Shown piece by piece: positions 2,294 to 49,214 of a stretch of DNA of 64,000 nucleotides; position 1 is the first letter of the stretch; each line of letters starts with the position of its first letter. The stretch is taken from assembly GCA_021613535.1 (NCBI GenBank), contig CP075494.1, forward strand, positions 16,120,001 through 16,184,000, written 5' to 3'. This DNA is from Adineta vaga. Lineage: Eukaryota; Animalia; Rotifera. The notes below the pieces were generated by a model that searched no databases, had not been told where the DNA came from, and saw nothing but the letters and a program-made list of their open reading frames with translations. Made by a program: the position numbers and the translations under genes.

Positions 2294-3253
2294 ATGTACT
2301 CTACAAGTAAATTCAGTATATTACTTGCTTTCGAAATTCCGGCTATCATTTTTTCAATCATTATCTTTGCTTATTTTGCTGTAAATCGTACAGCTCGAAC
2401 AAAAGTACAAAATCATGGTTGGCTTGTTTTACTTATTGTCAGTTTCATTCAGGTTATTATCAATTTGCCCATGCCCATTAGTTACTATTATTTGGGCAGA
2501 GTTGTTCCTGCATCAGATACATATTGTGCATGGTGGACTTGGTTCGAGTTTTCCTTGAACACTATTGGAATATTTCTTATGGCATGGATCTCAATCGAAC
2601 GACACATATTTGTTTTCTATTCCAATGCAATATTTCAAGGACGTTTTAAAAAGTGGATATGCCATTTTATACCAATTATTATCTGTCTTACTTGGACACC
2701 GTTCTTCTACTTTCTAGTAGTTGTCATTAGTCCATATTGCAGTCAGGAATGGGATTTTAATGTGATTATTTGTGGTGTTCCATGTTATTATATAAATAAG
2801 TCTGTTGGTCAATTTAATTTTCTTTTTAACGTTGCTTTTCCTATATTGATCATATTAATCGTAAACGTACTACTTGTTATTCGAGTGAACTACGAAAAGA
2901 TATCTCATCATCAAAAAATCAATTGGCGTAACCATCGTAAAATGATCCTTCAACTCTGGACAATCTCCTCCATATACTTGTTATGTTGGTTACCATTAAT
3001 GATTACAAAATTTGTTCAAATCACTGTTATGCCTACATTTATGGTAGATCATCTTGATATATTTCTATTTGCTGTTTATTTGGTTCCACTACTTTTACCA
3101 ATGGTATGTCTCAGTACATTGCCCAAGCTTATGAAAAAATTGATAAGCTTCATTCAGAAGCGAAATCAAAACATAGTTGGAGTAACACTTATTGGGGTAC
3201 CTACACGTATTGTTGGTAGAAGACAAATAGTGTTTAATATGACTAATCGATGA
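2294..3253 (+). CDS. Class A (rhodopsin-like) orphan GPCR, intronless
   Basis: Seven hydrophobic segments, TM3 Cys (YCAWW), SIERH (DRY-like), CWLP in TM6. Confidence 0.9.
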   Translation: MYSTSKFSILLAFEIPAIIFSIIIFAYFAVNRTARTKVQNHGWLVLLIVSFIQVIINLPMPISYYYLGRVVPASDTYCAWWTWFEFSLNTIGIFLMAWISIERHIFVFYSNAIFQGRFKKWICHFIPIIICLTWTPFFYFLVVVISPYCSQEWDFNVIICGVPCYYINKSVGQFNFLFNVAFPILIILIVNVLLVIRVNYEKISHHQKINWRNHRKMILQLWTISSIYLLCWLPLMITKFVQITVMPTFMVDHLDIFLFAVYLVPLLLPMVCLSTLPKLMKKLISFIQKRNQNIVGVTLIGVPTRIVGRRQIVFNMTNR

Positions 3254-6009: not shown

Positions 6010-6219
6010 AAACTTCCTAATACTTTATCACAGAAGAATCTTTCCAAGTTGATACATGATTGGAGAAAAAATACTCGCATATTTCTTTTTCTTTTCTCAC
6101 CACGTGCTATTATTGTTGTTTTTTCTCTATTTACTTCACGGTGACAATGTTGAGTATTGCATTTTAGTCATAAAAACTGTTACTCGCTGCTTATTTGTTG
6201 TACGAATAGAAAATACTAT

Positions 6220-8973
6220 ATGGAACAGTGTATTCTGATTTCTCTTGATTCCTCGTCAAATTCATTAATTGATGATTTAAAACAATTTCAACATGTCTTT
6301 AATTCCATACAACAGTTCACTGAGACAAATGCTTGTATAGACTATATAACAAATTCAAAAGTCAAGAAAATTTTTCTCATTATTTCATTTGAAGTTGTTC
6401 AAATCATCTCATTGATCAATCATTTACCACAAATTAATTCTATCTACATTCTTTATAATAATCTTGAAGGTGAAAAGCCAGATGAAAATCTATTACAACA
6501 TGAAAAAGTCCAAAGCATATGTGTAACCATTGATCAACTAATTACACAAATAAAACATGATATCAAGCATTTAGTGACTAATCATATAGGAATCAATAGT
6601 TTACCGAATGGTAATATTGGCTCATTTAGTAGAAGTGAACAGAACGACCAAAACAATGTTCAAGAAGCAACCTTTATGTATTCACAAATCCTACGTGATA
6701 TTTTTGTTCAAGAAAACTATACAGAAACAGATAAAAATGAAATGATCGATTTCTTTCGGCAGCAGTATCATGGCAATAAAAGTGAATTAGAAAAGATCAC
6801 TCGATTTCAATGTGATTATACAGCTGAACGTGCTATCTATTGGTATACAATGGATGGATTTCTTTATCGTACGATTAATAGAGCATTGAGAATGCAAGAC
6901 ATTTTGACTCTTTATCAATTACGTTATTTTATCAAAGATTTACATTTACAATTGAAAAAATATCACGCAGAATTTTGTTTGAATTCGTTACATGAAACAT
7001 TGACTGTCTACCGTGGAGTTGGATTACCAATCGATGTATTCGAAAAATTAAAACCAGGTCATCTGGTATCATTCAGTGAATTCTTATCTACGAGTAAGAG
7101 ACAAGATTTGGCAAAAATCTATGTTCGAAACGATGACGATAATATGCAAGCGATTTTATTTGAAATTGAGTTAAATTGTGCTATTCAAACATCAACGCCC
7201 TTCGCGGATATATCTGGACAGAGTCAATTCGACATTGAAAAGGAGATTCTTTTTTCTATGGGTAGCGTTTTTCGAATTGAAAGTTTATATCGAACAACAG
7301 AAACACGTTGGCATATAAAACTCTCTCAAACATCAGATGAAGATCAACAATTGAAATTATTACATAATTGGTTAGACCAAGCCATATTTCAAGTTCAACA
7401 TTTTCACTCGAAATTGAGTTCACTTATGTTATTTATCTCTGATTATGATAAAGCTGAATATTTCTTACGAAAAACCGTAGGTCAACCAGGTTTTAGTGGA
7501 AGTACAGAAACTATTGCAGCAACGTTGGCAATTTTCGGTGAAATTTACTTTCATCAAAATAAATACGACGAGGCCATGACCTTATTTCAGCAAACAGTAG
7601 AATTATTAGAGAAAATTTCTGATAAAGACATATCGTCAACTGTACAACGATGTTACACAGGTTTAAGTGAAATTTATTTAGAACAACGACAATTTAAAAA
7701 AGGTAAGATGTGACAAACAGTCGAAAAGTAGTTTTTTCCTTTGCAATTTTGTACAATTTAGTGTAAAGATACGAACCTTTTTACAATATTTGTTTTAGCT
7801 TTGGAGTACAGTCAAAAATCGCTTGACATTATACTTTCTGATGAGTATATGAAGAGTATTGATCTTCTATTGGCAACGCGTTATAATAATATCGGACACA
7901 TTCATTACAAATTAGGACATACCGAACAGGCATTACATTATTTTCAAAAAGCGCTTGATTATACCGCTTCTCTCCTACCTAATATTCCTCTCTTATCAAA
8001 AATATTTTGTAATTTTGCAATGACTTATGAGCAATGTGAAGATTATTCGAATGCAGAATTGTATTGGCACAAAGGACTTGAACATCATCTTAAATCATTG
8101 CCTAATGATACAGATGCCACTGCGTATCTCTTTCAAGCTGTAGCATCCAATTTAATTGACCATAAGAAATATCATGAAGCCATTGAACTTTTAAAAAAAT
8201 CATTGATCGTTTGCAAAAGTCAAGGATCAAAGACATTATGTTGCTGCTATAAGATTTTAGCAACTGCTTATCATGCGATTGGAAAATCTCAATTCGCTAC
8301 CGATTATATTCACAAAGCTATCGAACTTGCACAAACTCTGACAGATATGGATTTAAGTATTATGTATGTGGATAGTGGTAATATTTATTATAGCATCCAA
8401 CAATATCAAGAGGCACTGATATCATATGAGAAAGCACTGAAATGTTCTCGACCATCTGCCAGACTTTCAATACACATGAAGATTTTTTTAACTTACACAA
8501 ATCAGAACAAATCGAATACGGCATTGCATTATTACGAGAATCACCTCCAAGAAAATATATCCGAACTTGATTCTGACGATCATATCTTAATACATTATTA
8601 TATTGGAGTGAATTATGATAGTTTAAAGAACTATGATCAAGCATTGAAATATCTCAAAATAGCTCAAGAACTGATGTTGTCCGTGTCAAAATACAAATCA
8701 TTTATTATCAATATACTCAAAAGAATGGGAGATATTCTAATCAAACAAGAACAATGGTCAGATGCAAATAATATTTTAAAAAAATTATCAACTTTTCAAT
8801 CATCGGCAAACGTTCATCTAAACATAGGTGTTATTAATATTAAGCAAAAGAATTTTCAAGATGCGATTCAAAGTTTACGAACGGCGCAAGAACTGGCTAA
8901 AGTGACTGGTGATTTATTCACATTAGAAATAGCCACAAGACAACTCAATTTATTGAGTAAAACAGAAAACTAA
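6220..8973 (+). CDS. ADP-ribosyltransferase (ARTC, R-S-E type) plus TPR-array protein; 2 exons (6220-7702, 7799-8973)
   Basis: AIYWYT, INRALR, VYRG, FLSTS and EKEILF motifs followed by many TPR repeats; GT-AG intron 7703-7798 joins the two ORFs in frame (G|CT = Ala). Confidence 0.9.
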
Positions 8974-18225: not shown

Positions 18226-19182
18226 ATGTCTTCTGTAGTTAATGAAACCATTATTAGATTTACTTATCTAACTTTACGTATAAATGCCATACTCGCTCCG
18301 CCCATTTTGATTCTTGGTACAATTGGTAATTTAATTAATACTTGGATATTTACACGAAGATGTCTACGAAAAAATCCCTGTTCCATCTATTTTTGTTCAG
18401 CATCTATTGTTAGTTTGTTAACACTTTATTCTGGGTTAATGAGTCGTCTTCTCGGAGGTTATTCGATCGATTTAACAACTTGGAATCATTTTCTATGTAA
18501 ATTACGTTTCTATTTCTATTATGTAAATGTTATCCTTTTATCATGGTTTCTGGTCTTTGCCTCATTCGATCGTTATGTTTCGACATCACAATTTGTACAT
18601 TATCGAAATATAAGTTGTCGTCGGATTGCCTATCGTTTTGTACTATATTCAACAATTCTAAGCATTCTCTTTCATCTTCAAGTTTTCTACTGTTTCGTCG
18701 CCGATCGAAATCAATTTCCAGTTCAATGTTATTCGAAAGGTGAAATTTGTCGATCTTTCAATGATCTACATTTCTTAATCATCTATTCACTTCTACCTGC
18801 TATTCTAATGGCGATTTTTGGATGTCTAACAATTAAAAATGTTCATCAAATAGGAAGACGAATTGATTCGTCAGCAAATATTTCTATCTTTCGACAAAAG
18901 ACAACTCAACTTATACCAATGTTACTTGTTCAAATCTGTTTCTTTCTTATTTTTACTATCCCACTGGCTGTAACGAAATTCTATAGTACGTTAATAGTTC
19001 TTTTACATTTAGAATTAACGTCTGAAACCATCGCTCGTGAAACATTTGTTTTCAATATAACAGTTTTAATCTCATATCTTAACTGTTCAATTAGTTTCTA
19101 TGTTTATACTTTAGCTGGAAGTTTATTTCGAAAAGAATTGAAGAAAGCAATGCATCGAATTATTACTAAAATTCATCTTTAA
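18226..19182 (+). CDS. Class A orphan GPCR, intronless
   Basis: GTIGN in TM1, NPCSIYF, FLCKLR, SFDRY and FYVYTL..FRKEL motifs. Confidence 0.92.
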   Translation: MSSVVNETIIRFTYLTLRINAILAPPILILGTIGNLINTWIFTRRCLRKNPCSIYFCSASIVSLLTLYSGLMSRLLGGYSIDLTTWNHFLCKLRFYFYYVNVILLSWFLVFASFDRYVSTSQFVHYRNISCRRIAYRFVLYSTILSILFHLQVFYCFVADRNQFPVQCYSKGEICRSFNDLHFLIIYSLLPAILMAIFGCLTIKNVHQIGRRIDSSANISIFRQKTTQLIPMLLVQICFFLIFTIPLAVTKFYSTLIVLLHLELTSETIARETFVFNITVLISYLNCSISFYVYTLAGSLFRKELKKAMHRIITKIHL

Positions 19183-19248: not shown

Positions 19249-20703
19249 TTATTGTAGATGAATCCTATAGTTATATATGATAAGAATAGTACAAAATGCA
19301 ATCATAATGAATAAAAATATGAAATAGAGAAATTGCCGAAAACAAGTAGCAAATAAAAATGGTTGTTTTCTTCGAAAAATACCAATGTCATATGTTTGAA
19401 TCATCGAATGATTTTTCTTTCGATAAAATTGACAAGAACAATTCTTTAGTGAAAGATTTTTTACTTTTGAAGTTATTGATTTCTCATTTTTAAATAATGA
19501 AAAATTTGTCAATTGATAATTTAAACCATCATAAACTAAATAAATTAAACGTTGTTTACTTCTTTGAATAATCCATTGTTCAAATTGATCACAATGAAAT
19601 GTTCCTAACCAATGAATAAATCGAAAAATTTGAAAAATAAATTGAATAGTATAGAAATGTAAATAATCCATTTTGACTTGATCTATTCCAAGTGCATGAG
19701 ATATTTTATCTCCTAAAAGTATTTGAGAAATGCCAATATTTAATTTATATGATAATGGTAATTTTCCATGAAGATATGAAGTCATTAAAATATGATGAAC
19801 CATATGTTTTGAAATATATGTTGGAGAATAAAAATGATAGAAAATCGATTGTGAAATAATTTCTGCTAAATGATATGATGATAAATAAACAAGATATTGA
19901 TCATCAATTCCAATTAACCAACCAATATAACGCCAAAAATGTAAATAGGCTTCTTTATCATCATTAGATAAATTAATATGAAAACGATTTTCAATACAAT
20001 ATAATAAACTAAATGAAAATCCAAGTAATGTGATAAGAGAATCTTCTTGATTGATTGGAATATCATTGCGTTGAGATTTCATAATTTTATATCGAACCAT
20101 TCCATGTAAAAGACGAACACGTATGATATCAGAAAATGTTTCATCAAATTGATCAATATCTCCACAAATACTTGTTGCAATCATTTGTAATGTTTCTACT
20201 AAGCGACGATGACTTCGATTTAAATCATTTGATGAAAGATAATCTGTTTTATTTAGAACATCATTTAATTGTTGAAATCCATAACCTAATACTAATGTAT
20301 AATATAAAATTGATGTTAACATTAAGGATAAATTTTTTAAAAAGAATTTTTGACCATGTAGAATTTGTTTACGATTAAACCATGATGGTTTTTGACGAAT
20401 ATATTCATGAAATTCAATTAAACATGACGGATTTAATGGATTCTTAACGAGAAAACTTTGAAGCCATTCATAAGTATCATCACCATGTTGAAATTCTTCA
20501 CTATATTGTTGAAAGAATTGATCAATTAAAGGATCACCTTGTTTTCGCCATTGATTCAATAGAGTTGGTGAGACATGTTCGTTAGTCCAAATAAAGATTT
20601 GATCATAAAAACATATTTGTTGACCAATTATTGGTTCCAATCGATTGGATGGTCTTACTGAAACTGCATCGATCAGTTCATTGTGTGAGAAAGGACAAGA
20701 CAT
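19249..20703 (-). CDS. ER-bound oxygenase MpaB / rubber-oxygenase-like (DUF2236) protein with C-terminal TM anchor, intronless
   Basis: GDPLID, RRLVET, RVRLLHGMVR (heme His), PINQED and YLHFWRYIGWLIGI motifs. Confidence 0.85.
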   Translation of the reverse strand: MSCPFSHNELIDAVSVRPSNRLEPIIGQQICFYDQIFIWTNEHVSPTLLNQWRKQGDPLIDQFFQQYSEEFQHGDDTYEWLQSFLVKNPLNPSCLIEFHEYIRQKPSWFNRKQILHGQKFFLKNLSLMLTSILYYTLVLGYGFQQLNDVLNKTDYLSSNDLNRSHRRLVETLQMIATSICGDIDQFDETFSDIIRVRLLHGMVRYKIMKSQRNDIPINQEDSLITLLGFSFSLLYCIENRFHINLSNDDKEAYLHFWRYIGWLIGIDDQYLVYLSSYHLAEIISQSIFYHFYSPTYISKHMVHHILMTSYLHGKLPLSYKLNIGISQILLGDKISHALGIDQVKMDYLHFYTIQFIFQIFRFIHWLGTFHCDQFEQWIIQRSKQRLIYLVYDGLNYQLTNFSLFKNEKSITSKVKNLSLKNCSCQFYRKKNHSMIQTYDIGIFRRKQPFLFATCFRQFLYFIFLFIMIAFCTILIIYNYRIHLQ

Positions 20704-25062: not shown

Positions 25063-25854
25063 TTATTTCTTTAATAAAAGAACTAATTGTATAATAGAAA
25101 TAAAAAAAGATAAATTATATCGTTTATGATTAGCAGAAGATTTAATTAAATATTTACTCCAATTATCCATTGATTTAACTGATCCAACACCAGTATAGTG
25201 TAGTCTTCGTATTGGTCCCTTATAGTAGACAGTACCAACACTAGAAACATCGATATCAACAGCAGCATAACCAACAACATAGGCTGTACCAACACCAGTA
25301 ACAAATAAGGAAACTTTTTCTATTGAACATCTTGTTCCATCAAATGTATTGACACCATTCAAATGAATCATTCCAGTACCATTAACATGACCAGATAAAG
25401 TTAAATGAGCTGTTCCAAACATTTCAATATCAAGTTTGGAAGAAATATCTACTTGAATATCTCCAGTACTTGATCCAGACATTTTCAATTTCAAATAAAT
25501 AGATTGAAGTGAATTTGTCGTTCGAATACTTTCTGTACCTGACATTTCAATCAATGATAAAGGTTTACGTATTCCAACATAAGCAATAATCTTTGGATAT
25601 TGTCCATTCTTAATCATAATCTTAAGAGTACTTTTAGATATAACACTAATACAACAATCATGAACCCATTGTTCAGTTTCTATTTGTAATGTACTCATTG
25701 GAGCATTTTTATTAAGTTGTGTTATTACATAACTAACAATACCATCGGATTCTAATGAAGTTATATCTTTGTCCAATTTATAATTAATTCGTCGTACTTC
25801 ACCACAAATCGTTGCTATTCCAAAGTAGAAAACGATAAATATTGATTTCAACAT
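25063..25854 (-). CDS. DUF2807 / GIN (autotransporter adhesin head) beta-helix protein with signal peptide and predicted GPI tail
   Basis: Repeated hxhSGxGxhxh units (MSGT, MSGSS, MFGTA, LNGVN, VTGVG, VSSVGTVYYKG); hydrophobic N- and C-termini. Confidence 0.8.
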   Translation of the reverse strand: MLKSIFIVFYFGIATICGEVRRINYKLDKDITSLESDGIVSYVITQLNKNAPMSTLQIETEQWVHDCCISVISKSTLKIMIKNGQYPKIIAYVGIRKPLSLIEMSGTESIRTTNSLQSIYLKLKMSGSSTGDIQVDISSKLDIEMFGTAHLTLSGHVNGTGMIHLNGVNTFDGTRCSIEKVSLFVTGVGTAYVVGYAAVDIDVSSVGTVYYKGPIRRLHYTGVGSVKSMDNWSKYLIKSSANHKRYNLSFFISIIQLVLLLKK

Positions 25855-26401: not shown

Positions 26402-27444
26402 TTATTTAAGTTCTAATTCAATTGGAGAAACTTGATTAATAACTATTGTTTGTGTTCTCAATCGATTGAGATGTTTTTTAAATAGTACATAAATAGATTG
26501 TCGACGATATCGTTCAGATATACATATATAAACATAAAATGAAATCTAAAAGAAATTTTGTACAGAGATTTTCTCGTTATTCAACTTCTACTTACCGAAA
26601 AATACGTATAGAATAAGATTAATGTCATAGTATAAAGAAATTGCATTAGATCTGTAAAAGAACGATCTTTTTTTACATTCGATGTTGCATATGCAATAGC
26701 ATTTGTTATAATCCATGGTGTATTTGTAAATGAATTAATTACAACTTGTATAAAAACCATTTTTGTCAATTGTTTATCTAATTCTCTTCGAACAAGTGGA
26801 ACTGTTAGACGAAGTATTTGTTGAATATTTTGATAAGACATTATTCCAAATATAACTGTTATTAAATCAGGTAGAAATCCGGAGAGAAATAAGATAATAA
26901 AATAGTATCTATATTCCATCAGATTGACATTAGTTAAAGTACAACTAGTTTTTCCTGTAGAAAGTAATACATGATTAGAAAATACAATATATGGAATGGC
27001 GTGAACACTCCATAAAATAGTAAATATAACAATTAGACGATGAGCTATTTTAATTTTACTATATTGTTGCCAATGAAAACGGTTACAAGTTGAAAAATAT
27101 TGATCAATTGTTGCTAAACATAAACATGTATATGACATTGATGTACACCATTGCCAAAATGCTAATCGAAATTTACAATAAAATAATGATGTTATTTGCC
27201 AATCAATTCCATATCCACTATCCATAATACGAGATAGAAGACCTGAAAGTAATTGACCAATATCGGCAATTGACATTATAAGTAAATAAAATGCACATGA
27301 ACTTTCTCGAAATGTTTTAAGACTAGAAAATACAATTATATTTAATAGTCCGCCAAGAACACCCATAATAACAATAAATATACCACCATAAATTGCGACT
27401 CCTTCTGCAATTAAGTTAAGAATTGAACTTGTTGATGATGACAT
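26402..27444 (-). CDS. Class A orphan GPCR; 2 exons (27444-26596, 26545-26402)
   Basis: LKTFRESSCAFYL, CKFR, ATIDQY and RRELDKQLT motifs; intron 26546-26595 gives ISFYVYICISERYRRQ. Confidence 0.9.
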
Positions 27445-42513: not shown

Positions 42514-45500
42514 TTAGTTTTTACAAATAAGTTTATGTTTATATAATTTCCAATCATTAGTTTGACATTCTTTTGAACAATAACGAGCTTGTTCACATTT
42601 GCCACAAAATTTCGATGCATTTGCTTCACAACAATATCGACACATATTTAATATCCATTCTGATTCGCTTTGCATTACAATCGAAGAAATATCATCAACA
42701 CGAATCGATGGTTTCATATCAACTTTTCCTATTCGTAAATAAGGATTGATAATATGGATTTTTTTTCCAACAGTATATGATTTCTTGATTAAATATTCAC
42801 CTTGTTCTTCTGAAATTCCATAAATGAGCATACGTTGACAATCAAAATTTTCATCTTCAATGACAAGATGAATTGATGGAATCCATGAGAATGTCTCTTC
42901 AATAATTGTTACAGAAAGTACACGTCCAGTATAAACATAATCTTTTCTTGGATCCATTTCTCGTAATGTAATTGATTTCAAACCAATTAATGATTTGTCT
43001 GTTTGTTGTTTAACTCGAGGTTTCACAGTCGTCGAAATACTTTTATAAGCTGGATTCCGTTTTTCATCTAACGTTGTTTTCTCCCATTCACGATGATTTT
43101 TAATAAGTTCTATTCTATAAGGATCAGTAAGATGTTTTTTACGATTATTAATTGGTTCTGGTTCTACATTGTTGATCGTAGATTCCATCATATCAACAAA
43201 TGGTTGTATAAATGCAATATTTTCTGATTTATACGGCAAAAAACATGGTAATTGTAGCTTTTCTGCCTCTTTACCTTCTTTATATCTTTTAAAGATCCAA
43301 TCCATTGCAACATCAGGCCTATAATCTTTCATATAACATTGTGCCATTTCATAATATGCTTCAGGAATTTTTCGATGATCTTTTGGAGCAATTGTAATAA
43401 ATTTTTCATAGGCTTTAATTGCTTCATTCATATCTTTACCTATATGACGTAATAGAATAGCTTTATGATACAATAATGTATAATTATTAGGTTCTATTTC
43501 AAGTCCATGGTTTATATTATATAAGCCAGTGTCAGATTGACGTCGAAATCCATGTACTGCGCCACTTATTAAGTAGAAATAGATTGATTTTGGATATTTT
43601 TGTTTACATATCTCAAGAAATTGTTCAACTAATCCATATGAATTGATATTTAATGTTGCAAAACAGAATCGAACATCTTCATCCAGTTGTGAAGTAATAG
43701 ATTTTGATTCTTTGGTACATCGAAATAATACTCTTTCGATGATGTTACTGACTTTTTTATGCATGTGACTTGGAATTTGAGCTACAATAGTTTCAATACG
43801 ATAACATTGTGAGAGTTCATGAACAAATATATTCTCTTGTTCTTCGGTTAAAGTTTCAAAAGAAATGAGTATATTTAGCGCTTGTGTGTAATGTTCTAAT
43901 GCAGTACGAAGTTTCTTAGCTGTTATTGAACCACGACGAGCATAGTCGCATAACATCTCGTAATCTTTCAAATATAAGTGTTCAGATGCCACTGATGCAG
44001 AATATTTACTTTGACATGACAATAAGTAGTTCTCCGCTGTTTTCATTGCTTTTAAAACATCCGGTGAACATCGTTGACGTGCTTCCAATGTTTTTATAAA
44101 CTTATCACGATCTCGTCGAGCGACAACATTACCTGATTCACAAGCACGATCGTACCAAAGTCTTGCCATTTGAAAATCATTTTTACTTAATCGAATCTCT
44201 GCTAAAGTCATCATAGCAACTGGATCACCTCTTTTTGCTGCTAATTCATGTAATTGATCAGCTTTTTCAAGATCCTTGTCAACGGCAAGACCATCTAAAT
44301 ACATTGAACCTAAATTATTAGCAGCCATTGCACTACCATGATCAGTAGCACGTTGATACCAATAAACAGCTAATGAAAGATCTTTACGAACACTAATACC
44401 TTCAAAATATCTCACTCCTAAAGCGTGTTCAGATTCAGCTACACCAATGTTTGGTAAACCTTTTACTATAGGATGTTCTGGTGGTTGTGCCGCTGCCTTT
44501 TCAAGCCATTCGCGAGCCAAATTATGATCTTTTTTTACACCTAGACCTTTATCTAATAATCGTGCTAAATTATACATTCCTTCAGCATTACCCGCATTTG
44601 CTGCTTTAGCAAAATATTTCGCAGCTTGTTCATAATCTTGTATAACATCGATATCTCCAAGTGCAAATTGATGTCCTTTCATTACATCAGCTGCTGATGG
44701 ATCTATTAATTTGAGTAAATTTCTATTTTTTCTCATCATTTCTGGATCCAAACCGAACTTTTCTTTTAAGTCATTTAAATTTTCTGGAATTGTTTTCCAA
44801 TTCGTTCGTGGATCAAGATATTCTTGTCGTGAATTTCGATGAACTATTATTCGACTCTCATCTAATGCTGTTTGTATTTCAATTTTTGTTGGATCAAGTG
44901 CAAATGCTCGTTCAAATGAATCAATTGCCTTTTCATGTTCTTCTAAGACAACATAGACTTGTCCAACACGAAAATGTGCTTTCCACCATGTTAACCAAAG
45001 TTTTCTTGCTAGTTTAGCATCTTTTAAAGCACGATCTAATTCTTTTGTTATATCATCATCTTCACAACTATCCGACGAATATAATTGTTGTTTATAAAAT
45101 GCTAATCGACTTGCAGCCATATTCGAAAAGAAAGTAGCTCGATCATGATCTGCAACACCTGATAAAACTGTTGCTTTAATAAAGAATGTTATTGCTTGAG
45201 AATAATTTTCATCTTTATGAGCTTTTGTACCCAAGGAATTGAAATGAAATGCTTCTTTTTTATTTTCTTCATTTATTGTTTGTTTTGGTGAATCAAATAC
45301 ACTATCATCTTTTAATTTATCTAATTCACTTTCAATATCACCAAATGTAACTAAAATTACAGATATATCAATCCATAATTGATTAAATTCTGTATTATCA
45401 ATAAATTTTGATGGATGATGAACTAATTGATTTCTTAAATCTCTTAATTGTTTTAGAAGTACATCTTCTTGATCAAGTTGTTGTATTTCATTTGTATTCA

Positions 45501-45795
45501 ATGTTTGTGGACGATTACTATACAATAAAATAGAAGATAAAGTTGATAAATCCCATTCATCTGTATTTCCATTCGAAACAGATATTTTTTGTGTAGGTGT
45601 TAAATTGATTTTCTTATTTTTTAAAATAACATTTGTTAAATAATTGTTTCCACATGTTGGTAAATCAACCCATGTTTGACCATTGTTGAATAGTGAATAA
45701 CGATCTTTAAATAAATTACGAAGTATATTATTTGAACGTGAGATTAACAAATCTAGTTTGAAATAATTACGAACTTCCGTTGATATATTAGCCAT
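42514..45795 (-). CDS. HEPN (DZIP3-like) - TPR - Sel1 repeats - TPR - MYND zinc-finger protein, intronless, 1093 aa
   Basis: WDLSTL...LRNQLVH..S...F..LW N-terminal domain; TPRs (KAHFRVGQVY..LE); Sel1 repeats (GMYNLA....G.GV.KD, ANNLG.MY.DG); C-terminal CRYC...CGKC....YCSKECQ..DW...HK..C. Confidence 0.88.
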   Translation of the reverse strand: MANISTEVRNYFKLDLLISRSNNILRNLFKDRYSLFNNGQTWVDLPTCGNNYLTNVILKNKKINLTPTQKISVSNGNTDEWDLSTLSSILLYSNRPQTLNTNEIQQLDQEDVLLKQLRDLRNQLVHHPSKFIDNTEFNQLWIDISVILVTFGDIESELDKLKDDSVFDSPKQTINEENKKEAFHFNSLGTKAHKDENYSQAITFFIKATVLSGVADHDRATFFSNMAASRLAFYKQQLYSSDSCEDDDITKELDRALKDAKLARKLWLTWWKAHFRVGQVYVVLEEHEKAIDSFERAFALDPTKIEIQTALDESRIIVHRNSRQEYLDPRTNWKTIPENLNDLKEKFGLDPEMMRKNRNLLKLIDPSAADVMKGHQFALGDIDVIQDYEQAAKYFAKAANAGNAEGMYNLARLLDKGLGVKKDHNLAREWLEKAAAQPPEHPIVKGLPNIGVAESEHALGVRYFEGISVRKDLSLAVYWYQRATDHGSAMAANNLGSMYLDGLAVDKDLEKADQLHELAAKRGDPVAMMTLAEIRLSKNDFQMARLWYDRACESGNVVARRDRDKFIKTLEARQRCSPDVLKAMKTAENYLLSCQSKYSASVASEHLYLKDYEMLCDYARRGSITAKKLRTALEHYTQALNILISFETLTEEQENIFVHELSQCYRIETIVAQIPSHMHKKVSNIIERVLFRCTKESKSITSQLDEDVRFCFATLNINSYGLVEQFLEICKQKYPKSIYFYLISGAVHGFRRQSDTGLYNINHGLEIEPNNYTLLYHKAILLRHIGKDMNEAIKAYEKFITIAPKDHRKIPEAYYEMAQCYMKDYRPDVAMDWIFKRYKEGKEAEKLQLPCFLPYKSENIAFIQPFVDMMESTINNVEPEPINNRKKHLTDPYRIELIKNHREWEKTTLDEKRNPAYKSISTTVKPRVKQQTDKSLIGLKSITLREMDPRKDYVYTGRVLSVTIIEETFSWIPSIHLVIEDENFDCQRMLIYGISEEQGEYLIKKSYTVGKKIHIINPYLRIGKVDMKPSIRVDDISSIVMQSESEWILNMCRYCCEANASKFCGKCEQARYCSKECQTNDWKLYKHKLICKN

Positions 45796-46179
45796 AAGAG
45801 AACTATTTTATTGAGATATGTCGTTTAATTCAGAAGAGCTGAAATGGCAGTAAATATTACAAACTTTTTCTTTTTCTTATCTTCAAAATTCTGTCGTTAG
45901 TCAAAGAAAAAAAGATGAAAAGAAACACATAAGAAGGCAACATTATTTATTTTTTCTCATGTGTTTTTTTTTCATTCTCAAGAGAATGAGTTGTGCTTCT
46001 CAAATGATACAAGAGAAGAAAAGGAACAACATACGAATGAAGGAAAGATTTCAAGCAAACCAATTGATGTACTATTGATAAGATATGAAAAGACTTTTGA
46101 AAGAAAAGGACATTGATATATAGATGATGACATTTGAAAAATGACTTAATTTTTTGTTGACGAAAACATTCAGGTAACA

Positions 46180-47631
46180 ATGTACCCAAGTTTTATCAAA
46201 AAATACTTGACTTTTATACCAACAACAGTGGAACAAAATGAAAAATGGATTCATATAGCGGAACAAGGAGCAAGCTTGAATACCTATTTTTTGGACATTG
46301 AAAATAGTCACCTGAAGTTTTTGAACGATACTCTCAGTGATAAAAACTTTGTTAGTAGTTTGACCAATTATCACAAGAAACTCGTCATGGATAAGATGAA
46401 AACTTTACAATATGAATTTCCCAAACTAACAATCAATCTATATTCGGATTTTAAATCTCTTCGATTTTTATTTACAGATGATGTTCCTGTGAATTTACAA
46501 GAACATTTGATTCAATTACTAAAACCAATCAATGAAGAGTTTTCAAACTTTATTTATTCATGGGAAATATTTAGAAAAACAAATCACTCCGAAATCTGGT
46601 TTCGTGCTGGCTTTGGACAATCCGCCGATCAGGCAAATATTGCTGCTCGATATTCACGTCGTATGAAAATGAATACTTTCCAATCTTACGATGAAACTTC
46701 ATTTAGAATAATTTTACAGAATGAATTTCAAATGGTTGAAAACATCCGACAAACATTGTGTCATATATTCAAAGATACTTTGGTGCTTGAGGGAAATACA
46801 TTACATGAAAATGTTTTTGATATTATTCGTAGAAATATCGATAGCGAACAAAATATTTCAAATGTGATCAAACGACATTATGGTGTGAGTTTGATTTCTT
46901 TTGAAACTATTAATATCCTTCGAATATACGTAAAACTTATCGATACTTTTCAACCATGCTTATATATTCCAAAACGAGAATTTGCAAATATGAACGCGGC
47001 GAAGTTTGGAGGTTTTTCAGCAGATATTATAGGTTTAGGTTCGAAAAATCTTAAAGCAACAGCTGAAGCTCTGACAAAAAGCGATACTATCGATGAAGTT
47101 TTCGTACATACCCGTACTGCAGAGAGAACAGTAACTGAACAATTCGTTGAACAAAAGCGTTATTTTGAACGTATACTTAGAAAAACAATCGCTTCTGACA
47201 AATTTAAACTTACATATTCCGGAGATGATTGCGTAGTCATAGCAGCAGCACCTATTACAGATGATGAAAAAGAGGCAATTCTGTTCGAATTAAATAATGA
47301 TCAATATGCATGGAAATATCGCCTTGCATTTATTTCAGATGGAGTGAAAGATTGTGATGTAAGAAATATATTAAGTACTCACGGAGAAAGTATAGAAAAA
47401 CTGTTGAGAAAATCTTTAGAGAACGAGCTTGATCCAAGTAAATTAAAGAATCTCACATTTGGTATTGATATGAGAACACGTGAAGTCAATCAAGGAAGTG
47501 TTAGATTGATTTTAGTCGAATCTCACAGAGTAACATTCAATTCTAATGAGTATAAGACTATTCAAGAAATATTTAGGAAAGTTCTAGACGAAATAAACGA
47601 AATATTTAAATCTAAATATCAAACTGTTTAA
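46180..47631 (+). CDS. Hypothetical 483-aa protein with two palm-like (GGDEF/Cas10-like) motif sets, intronless
   Basis: The long clean ORF supports a gene. FLDIENSHLKFLND..YSDFK and FSADIIGLG...YSGDD suggest a palm/nucleotidyl-cyclase fold, but the function is tentative. Confidence 0.65.
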   Translation: MYPSFIKKYLTFIPTTVEQNEKWIHIAEQGASLNTYFLDIENSHLKFLNDTLSDKNFVSSLTNYHKKLVMDKMKTLQYEFPKLTINLYSDFKSLRFLFTDDVPVNLQEHLIQLLKPINEEFSNFIYSWEIFRKTNHSEIWFRAGFGQSADQANIAARYSRRMKMNTFQSYDETSFRIILQNEFQMVENIRQTLCHIFKDTLVLEGNTLHENVFDIIRRNIDSEQNISNVIKRHYGVSLISFETINILRIYVKLIDTFQPCLYIPKREFANMNAAKFGGFSADIIGLGSKNLKATAEALTKSDTIDEVFVHTRTAERTVTEQFVEQKRYFERILRKTIASDKFKLTYSGDDCVVIAAAPITDDEKEAILFELNNDQYAWKYRLAFISDGVKDCDVRNILSTHGESIEKLLRKSLENELDPSKLKNLTFGIDMRTREVNQGSVRLILVESHRVTFNSNEYKTIQEIFRKVLDEINEIFKSKYQTV

Positions 47632-47813
47632 CGTTTTCTAATATTGTGTTTACAAAGAACATGGCACTATGTGGGGAAAACGAAATCGTATACGGAGTTC
47701 GTATTCTTCATCTTGGGTATTCTTTCCTTTTTCATGTATTATTACCATATGTATTTATGATTGTTTGTTGGATGCATTATTTTCTATTCTTTTGTATTGC
47801 AAATAAACGATTA

Positions 47814-47899: not shown

Positions 47900-49160
47900 T
47901 ACCAGATTTGATTTCTAATCTTTGAAAATAAACATACTTAGTGATAGATTTGAATCAATATCAAGATTGTTTTCTGTTTTAAATTTCATTGATTTTTGTA
48001 AATATTGAGTACTTTTATCATAATTTCCTGTTAATGCTAAAAGACCACTAAGATCTTTATATAAATGAGCACATAAAGGATGATTTGATGGTAATTCATT
48101 TACAAAACCGAAGAAAATATTTTTCTGCTAAATCAAATTTACTCATATCTTTCAAAAGTCTTCTCAAACTTTGAAGATACATTTGTTCATTTTTTTCAGA
48201 AATATTTTCAAGACGAAATATTGAACCAAGCATAAAAAGAACTTCATATTCTCATGTATAATAACTATATTTACTTATTTCAGCAAATATTTGTGTTGTT
48301 ACTTTCTTCGAATCAGTATAGATTTGAAATACGACATTTTCAAGATCATTATTATTATTAGAAGAAAGAATTTTAGAGCAGTTTTGTAACCAATACTAGT
48401 AGAAAAAAATCAATTGACGATAGATGTCAAAGATGTATGAACGATACAAATAGATCATATGGATTTCTTGCAACCGTAACGCTGCATTCAACGTTTTGTA
48501 AAAAAAAACGTTTCTCTAGTATACCACAACATAATGCATTGTCTGAGGAATAATTATTTTGAAATTCTTTAATGTAATTTAATTCAGTTAAGTTTTCATT
48601 ATATTGATTTTTTAAAAAATGAATAAGTTCATTTTTATCATTTGAATTTGATTTTAATTGTAAAAGATAATCAATAAGTAATTGTGAAAATACAAAATCT
48701 CCATCAATATTTTTCGTCGTTTGTCCATCAAAATAATGAAATGATAATGGTTCTTCAATCTTTTTTTTGAATTTTATGATCTAATTCAATTCGCTGAATC
48801 AATTCATCAAGTTTCTTAACAACTGATTTTACCTAGAAGAAAAACAAACATTATTAGAATAGAAAATCTTCATTATTCTACTTTAGAATATTTGTCAGCC
48901 CATTATTTATTTCGTATTTCATCAAAACAATAAACATAAATAGATATAACTTGTCGAAGTTTATTAATCGATGTTGAGAAGATTTTTCTTCAATAAAAAT
49001 TCTTGACATTGTTTAACATCATGAAATTTTTTATAATTACTTACAATTGAACGTAATTTTTGTTCAGTATCTCGATTTTCTTTCACATTTACATCAAACC
49101 AAATAAAATAAAATATATCAAGATCTTTCTCGTACGTTGATATAATATTACTATAGCCAT
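47900..49160 (-). pseudogene. ART(-TPR) family pseudogene
   Basis: FIWFD..., LWYTRETFF/YKTLNAALR and EYEVLFMLGSIFRL motifs in broken frames; the YRG segment is missing; left boundary is approximate. Confidence 0.75.
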
Positions 49161-49214
49161 TTAAATTTATTTGAAATTTTCAAAAAGATATATCACATCA
49201 GATTTTTTTTCTTA

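Follow-up and report, generated by a model that had tools for sequence, protein, structure and literature searches.

The subject of this analysis is a pair of adjacent genes in a 64,000-nucleotide stretch of the genome of the bdelloid rotifer Adineta vaga (C5:16120001-16184000, from an assembly of 100.8 Mb in six contigs), called the window below, which lies on a 16.93-Mb chromosome, about 0.75 Mb short of its end. Both genes are uninterrupted, intronless open reading frames (ORFs) and they are divergent: gene A, on the minus strand, encodes a protein with HEPN, TPR, Sel1 and MYND domains, and gene B, on the plus strand, encodes a protein with two predicted palm domains. An earlier note on this DNA had described two intronless genes diverging from a 384-bp spacer and had proposed that they form a co-regulated unit, in which gene B would be the synthase of a nucleotide signal and gene A its HEPN effector. 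The arrangement is as described, with both ORFs intact and 384 bp between the two start codons, and the caveat attached to the proposal, that the adjacency might be due to chance in a region of horizontal gene transfer, is the part that the evidence favours. A co-regulated synthase-effector module is not supported by the data assembled here: with a probability of about 0.7, we consider genes A and B to be unrelated, to have been brought together by horizontal gene insertion and not to constitute a synthase-effector operon. The features concerned, in window positions, are the following.

42514-45795, minus strand: gene A, 1093 amino acids, HEPN(DZIP3-type)-TPR-Sel1-(weak TTC5-like OB)-MYND; an intact ORF with Pfam domains, belonging to a bdelloid-wide multigene family
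42523-42642, minus strand: MYND zinc finger of gene A, residues 1052-1091 (PF01753, E 5.7e-6 and 1.1e-6 in two scans)
45301-45633, minus strand: HEPN domain of gene A, residues 55-165 (PF18738), with RNQLVH at 45418-45435
45796-46179, no strand: AT-rich spacer of 384 bp between the divergent start codons, as read from the sequence
46180-47631, plus strand: gene B, 483 amino acids, a tandem-palm protein matching the C-terminal module of exported bacterial proteins of about 780 amino acids
46207-46719, plus strand: palm 1 of gene B, residues 10-180, with a GGDEF-like fold (VIA-align)
47011-47334, plus strand: palm 2 of gene B, residues 278-385, with an mCpol/Cas10/cyclase-like fold and the SGDD hairpin at 47218-47229
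47918-49179 (approximate), minus strand: decayed ADP-ribosyltransferase (ART)-TPR pseudogene, convergent with gene B; collinear tblastn and tblastx matches in three frames

Gene B matched no Pfam family at E <= 1, the profiles of mCpol (PF18182), of the second Cas10 palm (PF22335, Cas10-Cmr2_palm2), PF00990 and PF00211 included; PADLOC and NCBIfam gave no relevant match, and searches of the PDB, by sequence with phmmer and by profile, were blank. Its fold is predicted with high confidence. An AlphaFold2 model built from 41 sequences (mean predicted local distance difference test, pLDDT, 91.7; predicted template modelling score, pTM, 0.88) contains two beta-alpha-alpha-beta-beta-alpha-beta units, at residues 36-146 and 278-385, with helices between them and an alpha/beta C-terminal part after the second. 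The best whole-chain matches in Foldseek were Cas10 proteins (Cmr2 3w2w; Csm1 6ifl and 9g9k) with a probability of 0.85-0.96, at an E-value of only about 1e-3 and a template modelling (TM) score of 0.23-0.30, the Cas10 alignments extending over 450-670 columns; mCpol, soluble adenylyl cyclase and GGDEF proteins were the runners-up.

The two palms were also compared separately with known structures, using VIA-align. Palm 1 superposes on the GGDEF domain of LapD (3pjx) with a Z of 13.5 and a root mean square deviation (rmsd) of 2.9 over 142 aligned residues, dozens of further GGDEF chains follow at Z 10-12.9 and mCpol at Z 10.8-10.9, and every one of the best 50 structural matches is a GGDEF, cyclase, mCpol or polymerase palm. 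Palm 2, which reaches a pLDDT of 91.1 when modelled alone, matches mCpol (9mnr; Z 8.9, 116/119 residues, rmsd 2.8) and residues 593-766 of Cmr2 (Z 8.1), as well as GGDEF and class III cyclases; these Z values fall in the grey zone of the tool, yet the best 50 rows all belong to one superfamily. A language-model search of the ESM Atlas placed mCpol as the cluster nearest to gene B (score 0.92). Aligned with each other by hhalign, palms 1 and 2 gave a probability of 2%, so that the sequences give no evidence of a recent internal duplication, though the folds match. Taken from the models, the assignment of gene B to the GGDEF/class III cyclase/Cas10-mCpol superfamily of palm-domain proteins, with two palms, is thus supported, and the palm domain suggested by the earlier note is borne out, Foldseek having been one of the checks that it recommended.

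The motifs cited for that suggestion are all present at the stated places, one of them in a looser form than described. SGDD is present (residues 347-350, 47218-47229), and the hD..GhG motif is found as SADIIGLG (residues 280-287, 47017-47040; ADIIGLG being 281-287). The third motif, 'hhD..K.hND', is not literal: the corresponding segment, FLDIENSHLKFLND (residues 37-50, 46288-46329), has extra residues and is only loosely like the GGDEF pattern 'DxDxFKxxND'. In palm 2, the 178 relatives aligned keep D282 without exception, G285 in 172, G287 in 174 and R381 in all 178, and in the hairpin G348 is kept in 177, D349 in 176 and D350 in 172. Palm 1 retains N49 (177 of 178), D90 (174), K92 (177) and R160 (175), and its strand-1 acid, D39, is variable (106/178). 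Gene B itself keeps every residue that is invariant in its family. Conservation at this level in palm 2, like that of the HEPN motif in gene A, makes these motifs more than chance matches. In the model, D282 on strand 1 and D349 and D350 in the hairpin correspond by position to the two-metal acids of cyclases, GGDEF proteins and Cas10; from these positions we infer that palm 2, the likely catalytic half, bears the one catalytic centre and that palm 1 is its partner and holds a nucleotide. The public model of the gene (P0001, I4U23_027146, 370 amino acids) seems to be truncated, as it starts at M70, lacks the first strand of palm 1 and also splices out an internal piece of the ORF.

Apart from the A. 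vaga model I4U23_027146, homology searches with gene B recovered one protein of 593 amino acids from a Logan assembly (P0002, 58% identity), and the remaining matches were hypothetical proteins of about 720-830 amino acids from Bdellovibrio, Pseudobdellovibrionaceae and relatives, Halobacteriovorax included, with 41-49% identity. The gene B ORF aligns with the C-terminal 480 or so residues of these bacterial proteins (from about residue 300 to the end), and the first 300 or so have no counterpart in the window; the rotifer gene begins exactly at the module and lacks a signal peptide. In a FastTree phylogeny of 178 modules, the rotifer protein and P0002 grouped together (support 100) inside a clade of named Bdellovibrio (16 rows, support 97). 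IQ-TREE under LG+C20, applied to 49 rows, again placed the two (support 100) inside the 16-row Bdellovibrio clade (SH-aLRT 98), with the B. bacteriovorus group as sister. Since gene B is nested inside the genus Bdellovibrio in these trees, it is, on phylogenetic grounds, a gene horizontally acquired from within that genus; the stem of the eukaryote-type sequences is long (1.02) and their composition is deviant, which leaves the exact donor uncertain, while the nesting is well supported.

Gene B is single-copy in the A. vaga genome, its GC content of about 0.31 is like that of its surroundings and of the host, and DNA-type sequencing runs from three studies contain the stretch. The ratio of non-synonymous to synonymous substitution rates (dN/dS) between gene B and the gene for P0002 is 0.26-0.38, with dS near 1, which places the gene under purifying selection since the transfer. 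P0002 (L001:483-2264) carries a Ser-rich N-terminal extension of about 110 amino acids and likewise lacks a signal peptide. Its contig (2.4 kb, GC 41.5%, run SRR10663368) looks like a transcript contig, and its flanks, in which no match to gene A was found, are hence uninformative on synteny.

The bacterial relatives form a large and almost exclusively Bdellovibrionota family. A scan with one genome per species gave 53 loci, all but two labelled Bdellovibrionota, the exceptions being metagenome-assembled genomes labelled Bacillota and Sulfitobacter; a profile search of 1.84 billion representatives gave 754 clusters at 50% identity (417 at E <= 1e-30); and within a Bdellovibrionota sample a single-protein query matched 58 of 201 genomes, mostly with one copy each. 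The module is preceded by a highly variable N-terminal region of 0 to about 860 residues. A signal-peptide-like N-terminus (basic, then hydrophobic, with an A-x-A-like site) is present in 47 of 52 full-length members, as against 15 of 183 conserved neighbour genes, and this includes short members of about 540 amino acids, in which the signal lies directly ahead of the palms. Bdellovibrio members have a Cys-rich region of about 250 amino acids after the signal, and the N-terminal regions of six long relatives had no Pfam match. The genes kept in the neighbourhood in many species encode two dihydrouridine synthases (Dus), a methyltransferase, an EVE-domain protein, YchJ, an SDR protein and acetyl-CoA synthetase (acs), and no CARF, SAVED, HEPN or Cas gene was found beside the relatives in the neighbourhoods examined. 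Because of these signal-like N-termini and housekeeping neighbours, the donor protein is best described, from sequence and context, as an exported enzyme of a predatory lineage and not as a component of a defence operon.

One relative from Bdellovibrionota is exceptionally long (P0152, 2464 amino acids, L076:10001-17395). Its tandem-palm module occupies residues of about 900-1390. It also has a precomputed Pfam match to HopBF1_kinase, which was not reproduced in our own Pfam scan, and an MNT/HepT toxin-antitoxin pair lies directly downstream of its gene.

Gene A is of a very different kind. Pfam identifies Sel1 (E 4.6e-32), TPR, zf-MYND (E 5.7e-6) and HEPN_DZIP3 in its product, in the order HEPN_DZIP3 (residues 55-165), TPRs, four Sel1 repeats, further TPRs, a weak TTC5_OB-like stretch and a C-terminal MYND finger. 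The HEPN_DZIP3 match (PF18738) scored 24.7 bits (E 2.2e-5) in the protein scan, under the cut-off of 27 bits, and 28.3 bits, above it, in a six-frame search of the genome, in which all seven other A. vaga matches were above the cut-off as well. The intact RNQLVH of a DZIP3-type HEPN domain that the earlier note had placed at 45418-45435 is exactly there; it forms residues 121-126 and is the sole R-x4-H in the first 220 residues, and 20 sequences, drawn from bdelloids, a fungus and a protist transcriptome, all keep R121, N122 and H126. The TTC5_OB match (E 0.011, 87/115 profile positions) is below threshold and is a lead only; an Atlas lead in the same direction scores 0.77. Pfam and PADLOC scans of gene A gave no CARF, SAVED or other known nucleotide-sensor domain, in agreement with the earlier note, and residues of about 560-760 had no domain match. 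The DZIP3-type HEPN family is mainly animal, with lineage-specific expansions and TPR fusions (PMC3710099). Judged from its sequence, the HEPN domain of gene A is likely to be an RNase; the accessory domains of the protein are modules for protein binding and most simply suggest control by protein ligands.

The gene A family comprises, in A. vaga, five full-length copies (53-57% identity) and about six partial or broken ones, dispersed over chromosomes 1, 3, 4 and 5, and homologues occur in A. ricciae, A. steineri, several Rotaria species and Didymodactylos. Proteins of HEPN_DZIP3-TPR-Sel1-MYND type with 26-30% identity were also seen in Mortierellaceae (P0296, P0298) and in the springtail Orchesella (P0302), a patchy distribution that may involve gene transfer. 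The public model of gene A (P0189, 868 amino acids) seems to be truncated, the HEPN end of the 1093-residue ORF being missing, though putative RNA contigs cover 45377-45838.

If genes A and B formed a unit, their linkage might be expected to recur, and the earlier note had named synteny of the pair across bdelloids as a check. In A. ricciae, A. steineri and Rotaria sordida, the homologues closest to gene A have no match to gene B within 10 kb, and a protein search with gene B, spanning proteins of 0.55-1.75 times the query length, gave no homologue from these three species. The comparison has its bounds, as the flanks are not conserved between species and the loci compared are perhaps not positional orthologues. 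The closest A. ricciae homologue of gene A is 78% identical in amino acids and 84% in nucleotides, with the alignment confined to the ORF; this homologue (L080:7011-13288) stands head-to-head with a gene for an 886-amino-acid ART-domain protein across a 277-bp spacer. The gene A paralogs have trypsin, G protein-coupled receptor (GPCR), ART-TPR and VIT-VWA genes as neighbours, and no conserved partner common to them was found among these neighbours.

Assembled contigs from sequencing runs that are RNA by guess only were also compared with the pair; such contigs show presence, not absence or level. Contigs of runs X1, X2 and X5 tile gene A over 42534-45838. In the spacer, one 151-nt contig of X6 covers 45769-45919 and none lies on 45920-46179, and for gene B these putative RNA runs hold a 269-nt piece of X6 and short chimeric pieces of X1 and X2. 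X1 and X2 each have two short pieces inside gene B (about 46788-46956 and 47536-47714) that run on into 255 letters unlike the window. The loose ends have no match elsewhere in the window and could stem from chimeric contigs, a divergent copy or splicing.

These observations lead us to the following account. Gene B would be the C-terminal enzymatic module of a Bdellovibrio protein whose export depends on a Sec-type signal peptide. Neither this signal nor the Cys-rich N-terminal region would have come along when an ancestor of A. vaga captured the module, which purifying selection would have maintained since. The two palms may form an intramolecular pseudo-dimer, as in Cas10 or the heterodimeric class III cyclases, with palm 2 (D282 and G348-D349-D350) as the putative two-metal catalytic centre and palm 1 (N49, D90, K92, R160) holding a second nucleotide, and such an enzyme would condense or cyclise nucleoside triphosphates (NTPs) to a cyclic or linear (oligo)nucleotide. 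Gene A would be an ordinary member of a bdelloid multigene family, probably a HEPN RNase with protein-binding TPR, Sel1 and MYND modules and perhaps a TTC5-like OB fold. The pairing is most likely incidental, the foreign gene having inserted beside gene A in a mosaic region close to the end of a chromosome.

Several points weigh against this account. Only the ORF of gene A aligns in A. ricciae, so that the absence of gene B there cannot date the pairing. A. vaga has about 3x10^4 genes, and the chance that one of the two neighbours of gene B belongs to the gene A family is about 10^-3 by our own estimate (uniform placement, about ten loci); post hoc selection and the clustering of conflict-type families near chromosome ends raise this figure by an unquantified amount. 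A short spacer between divergent genes permits a shared bidirectional promoter, and both ORFs are intact and constrained. The case from expression is weak, the runs being RNA by guess only and contigs being no proof of absence. Finally, a synthase could signal in trans to all the HEPN paralogs, for which linkage would be dispensable.

A different purpose for the enzyme, with the gene A pairing just as incidental, is unlikely: by analogy with secreted cyclase toxins such as ExoY, CyaA and edema factor, the tandem-palm module may be a weapon, an exported toxin-like cyclase or NTP-consuming enzyme directed at prey, which the rotifer would have turned to an anti-microbial or other non-signalling use. 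The signal-peptide-like N-termini of 47 of the 52 members fit such a role, as do the toxin-like architecture, in which N-termini of highly variable length (0 to about 860 residues) precede a conserved C-terminal module, the precomputed match to a HopBF1-type effector kinase in the 2464-residue member and the confinement of the family to predatory Bdellovibrionota. The conserved housekeeping neighbourhood and the usual single copy are more suggestive of a core function than of a polymorphic toxin, however, no immunity-like small neighbour is conserved, the HopBF1 match was not reproduced, and a rotifer would hardly tolerate a cytosolic, signal-less and catalytically intact toxin.

We regard as improbable the proposal that the pair is a true synthase-effector module, with a shared bidirectional promoter and a nucleotide signal, made by gene B, that would switch on the HEPN RNase of gene A and perhaps those of its paralogs. 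In type III CRISPR systems, the products of Cas10 activate HEPN RNases such as Csm6, and this known Cas10-to-HEPN logic speaks for the proposal, as do head-to-head genes with a 384-bp spacer, a palm 2 with a conserved GDD that is closest to mCpol and to the second palm of Cas10, an invariant RN...H in the HEPN domain of gene A, and an adjacency that is rare a priori (the 10^-3 above, under uniform placement). The mCpol systems also signal to effectors (PMC12657218, PMC12657230). Gene A, however, has no CARF, SAVED or known nucleotide sensor, its other domains being protein-binding repeats; gene B is single-copy and the ten or so other gene A family loci have other neighbours; the pair is not seen at the A. 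ricciae, A. steineri and R. sordida loci; the protein of the donor lineage is exported and has housekeeping neighbours; and the putative RNA runs cover gene A and essentially not gene B. In a related form of the proposal, for which we also hold little expectation, the exported predator enzyme would have become a cytosolic signal synthase of the rotifer, controlling the HEPN RNase, and possibly its paralogs in trans, through a sensor surface of neither CARF nor SAVED type; if true, this would be an animal second-messenger defence module made of a foreign synthase and a native effector.

That gene B is a functionless relic or a bacterial contamination of the assembly, as little or no coverage in the putative RNA runs, the truncated 370-residue public model P0001 and the decayed ART pseudogene in the same region might suggest, is barely credible against a 483-codon ORF that is intact, collinear with the bacterial proteins and in possession of all family-invariant residues, a dN/dS of 0.26-0.38 relative to the second eukaryote-type copy, a host-like GC content of about 31%, a place on a 16.9-Mb chromosome with a bdelloid-specific gene 384 bp away and the presence of the stretch in DNA-type runs of three studies.

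The preferred reading, insertion of a foreign gene beside an unrelated resident, can be set in the context of the window, which is a mosaic of GPCR genes, intact and decayed ART-TPR genes and candidate foreign genes, as expected near bdelloid chromosome ends; this setting fits an insertion of gene B between resident genes. The decayed ART that the earlier note had recognised directly downstream of gene B is indeed there, as three collinear pieces in different frames with short stop-free stretches only, which match the intact ART-TPR gene of the window with a combined E of 1.8e-24 (tblastn, tblastx). We rejected it as a third component of a unit, since it is one of a large and dispersed ART-TPR family, is broken up over three frames and converges on gene B.

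The intact gene of the same family, encoding an NAD:arginine ART-TPR protein, lies at 6157-8973 on the plus strand, and another ART-TPR gene lies upstream of a gene A paralog (L068:3158-5338). Two ORFs on the minus strand are candidate foreign genes, one at 19249-20703 with an MpaB/Lcp-type oxygenase domain (PF09995) and one at 25063-25854 with a DUF2807 'adhesin head GIN' domain (PF10988). Three intronless ORFs, at 2294-3253, 18226-19182 and 26581-27444, encode rhodopsin-type GPCRs (PF00001), and GPCR ORFs also adjoin two gene A paralogs (L073, L074).

The gene B family is, in our opinion, a more interesting result than the proposed module. Gene B defines a large unnamed family of at least 754 clusters at 50% identity, essentially restricted to Bdellovibrionota, which would point, from its sequence features, to an unexplored nucleotide-based activity outside the cytoplasm of the predator. 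The rotifer copy, without export signal and under constraint, provides a second, eukaryotic setting in which this activity may be tested. The apparently truncated public models hide the HEPN domain of gene A and the first palm of gene B from surveys based on proteomes.

Compared with known systems, gene A resembles the DZIP3/hRUL138-type HEPN proteins (PF18738), which its N-terminus matches with the R-x4-H kept. Fusions of this HEPN type include TPR, Zn-ribbon, RING and other modules (PMC3710099). The architecture of gene A (HEPN-TPR-Sel1-OB?-MYND, about 1095 amino acids) differs in being a bdelloid-wide expansion and in having no RING domain. The succession of TPRs and a weak TTC5_OB-like region, below threshold, recalls TTC5 (TPR and OB fold), which by contrast has neither HEPN nor MYND.

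Among the systems comparable to gene B are GGDEF diguanylate cyclases and class III nucleotidyl cyclases; about 140-150 residues of palm 1 fit onto GGDEF domains (Z 11-13.5). We take 'LDIENSHLKFLNDT' in palm 1 to recall the GGDEF motif 'DxDxFKxxND', and 'ADIIGLG' in palm 2 to recall 'DIxGFT' of class III cyclases. Gene B nevertheless lacks the GG[DE]EF signature, its hairpins reading YSDFK in palm 1 and SGDDC in palm 2, and its palms are fused and not a homodimer, without sensor or I-site features. The best structural match of palm 2 is mCpol (minimal CRISPR polymerase; OptS of Panoptes), both having a GGDD-type hairpin; mCpol is a single palm of about 120 amino acids that works as a homo-oligomer and whose gene is paired, within a defence operon, with one for a 2TM or CARF-TM effector (PMC12657218, PMC12657230, PMC13577387). 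Gene B, in contrast, has two different fused palms, no effector neighbour and no match to PF18182, and belongs to a family with signal peptides.

With Cas10 (Csm1/Cmr2), gene B shares two palms per chain, a helical region between them, a C-terminal domain after them and a G-D-D hairpin in the second palm. It differs from Cas10 in lacking an HD domain, the Zn-finger D2, Cas partners and a CRISPR context, in the signal peptide of its bacterial relatives, and in the absence of a sequence-level match, the whole-chain TM being only 0.23-0.30. We know of no described cyclase, GGDEF or Cas10 family that combines a Cas10-like palm pair with a signal peptide. Because neither sequence profiles nor gene context assign it to any of these groups, gene B is a new variant in the palm-domain cyclase/GGDEF/Cas10 superfamily, outside every named family.

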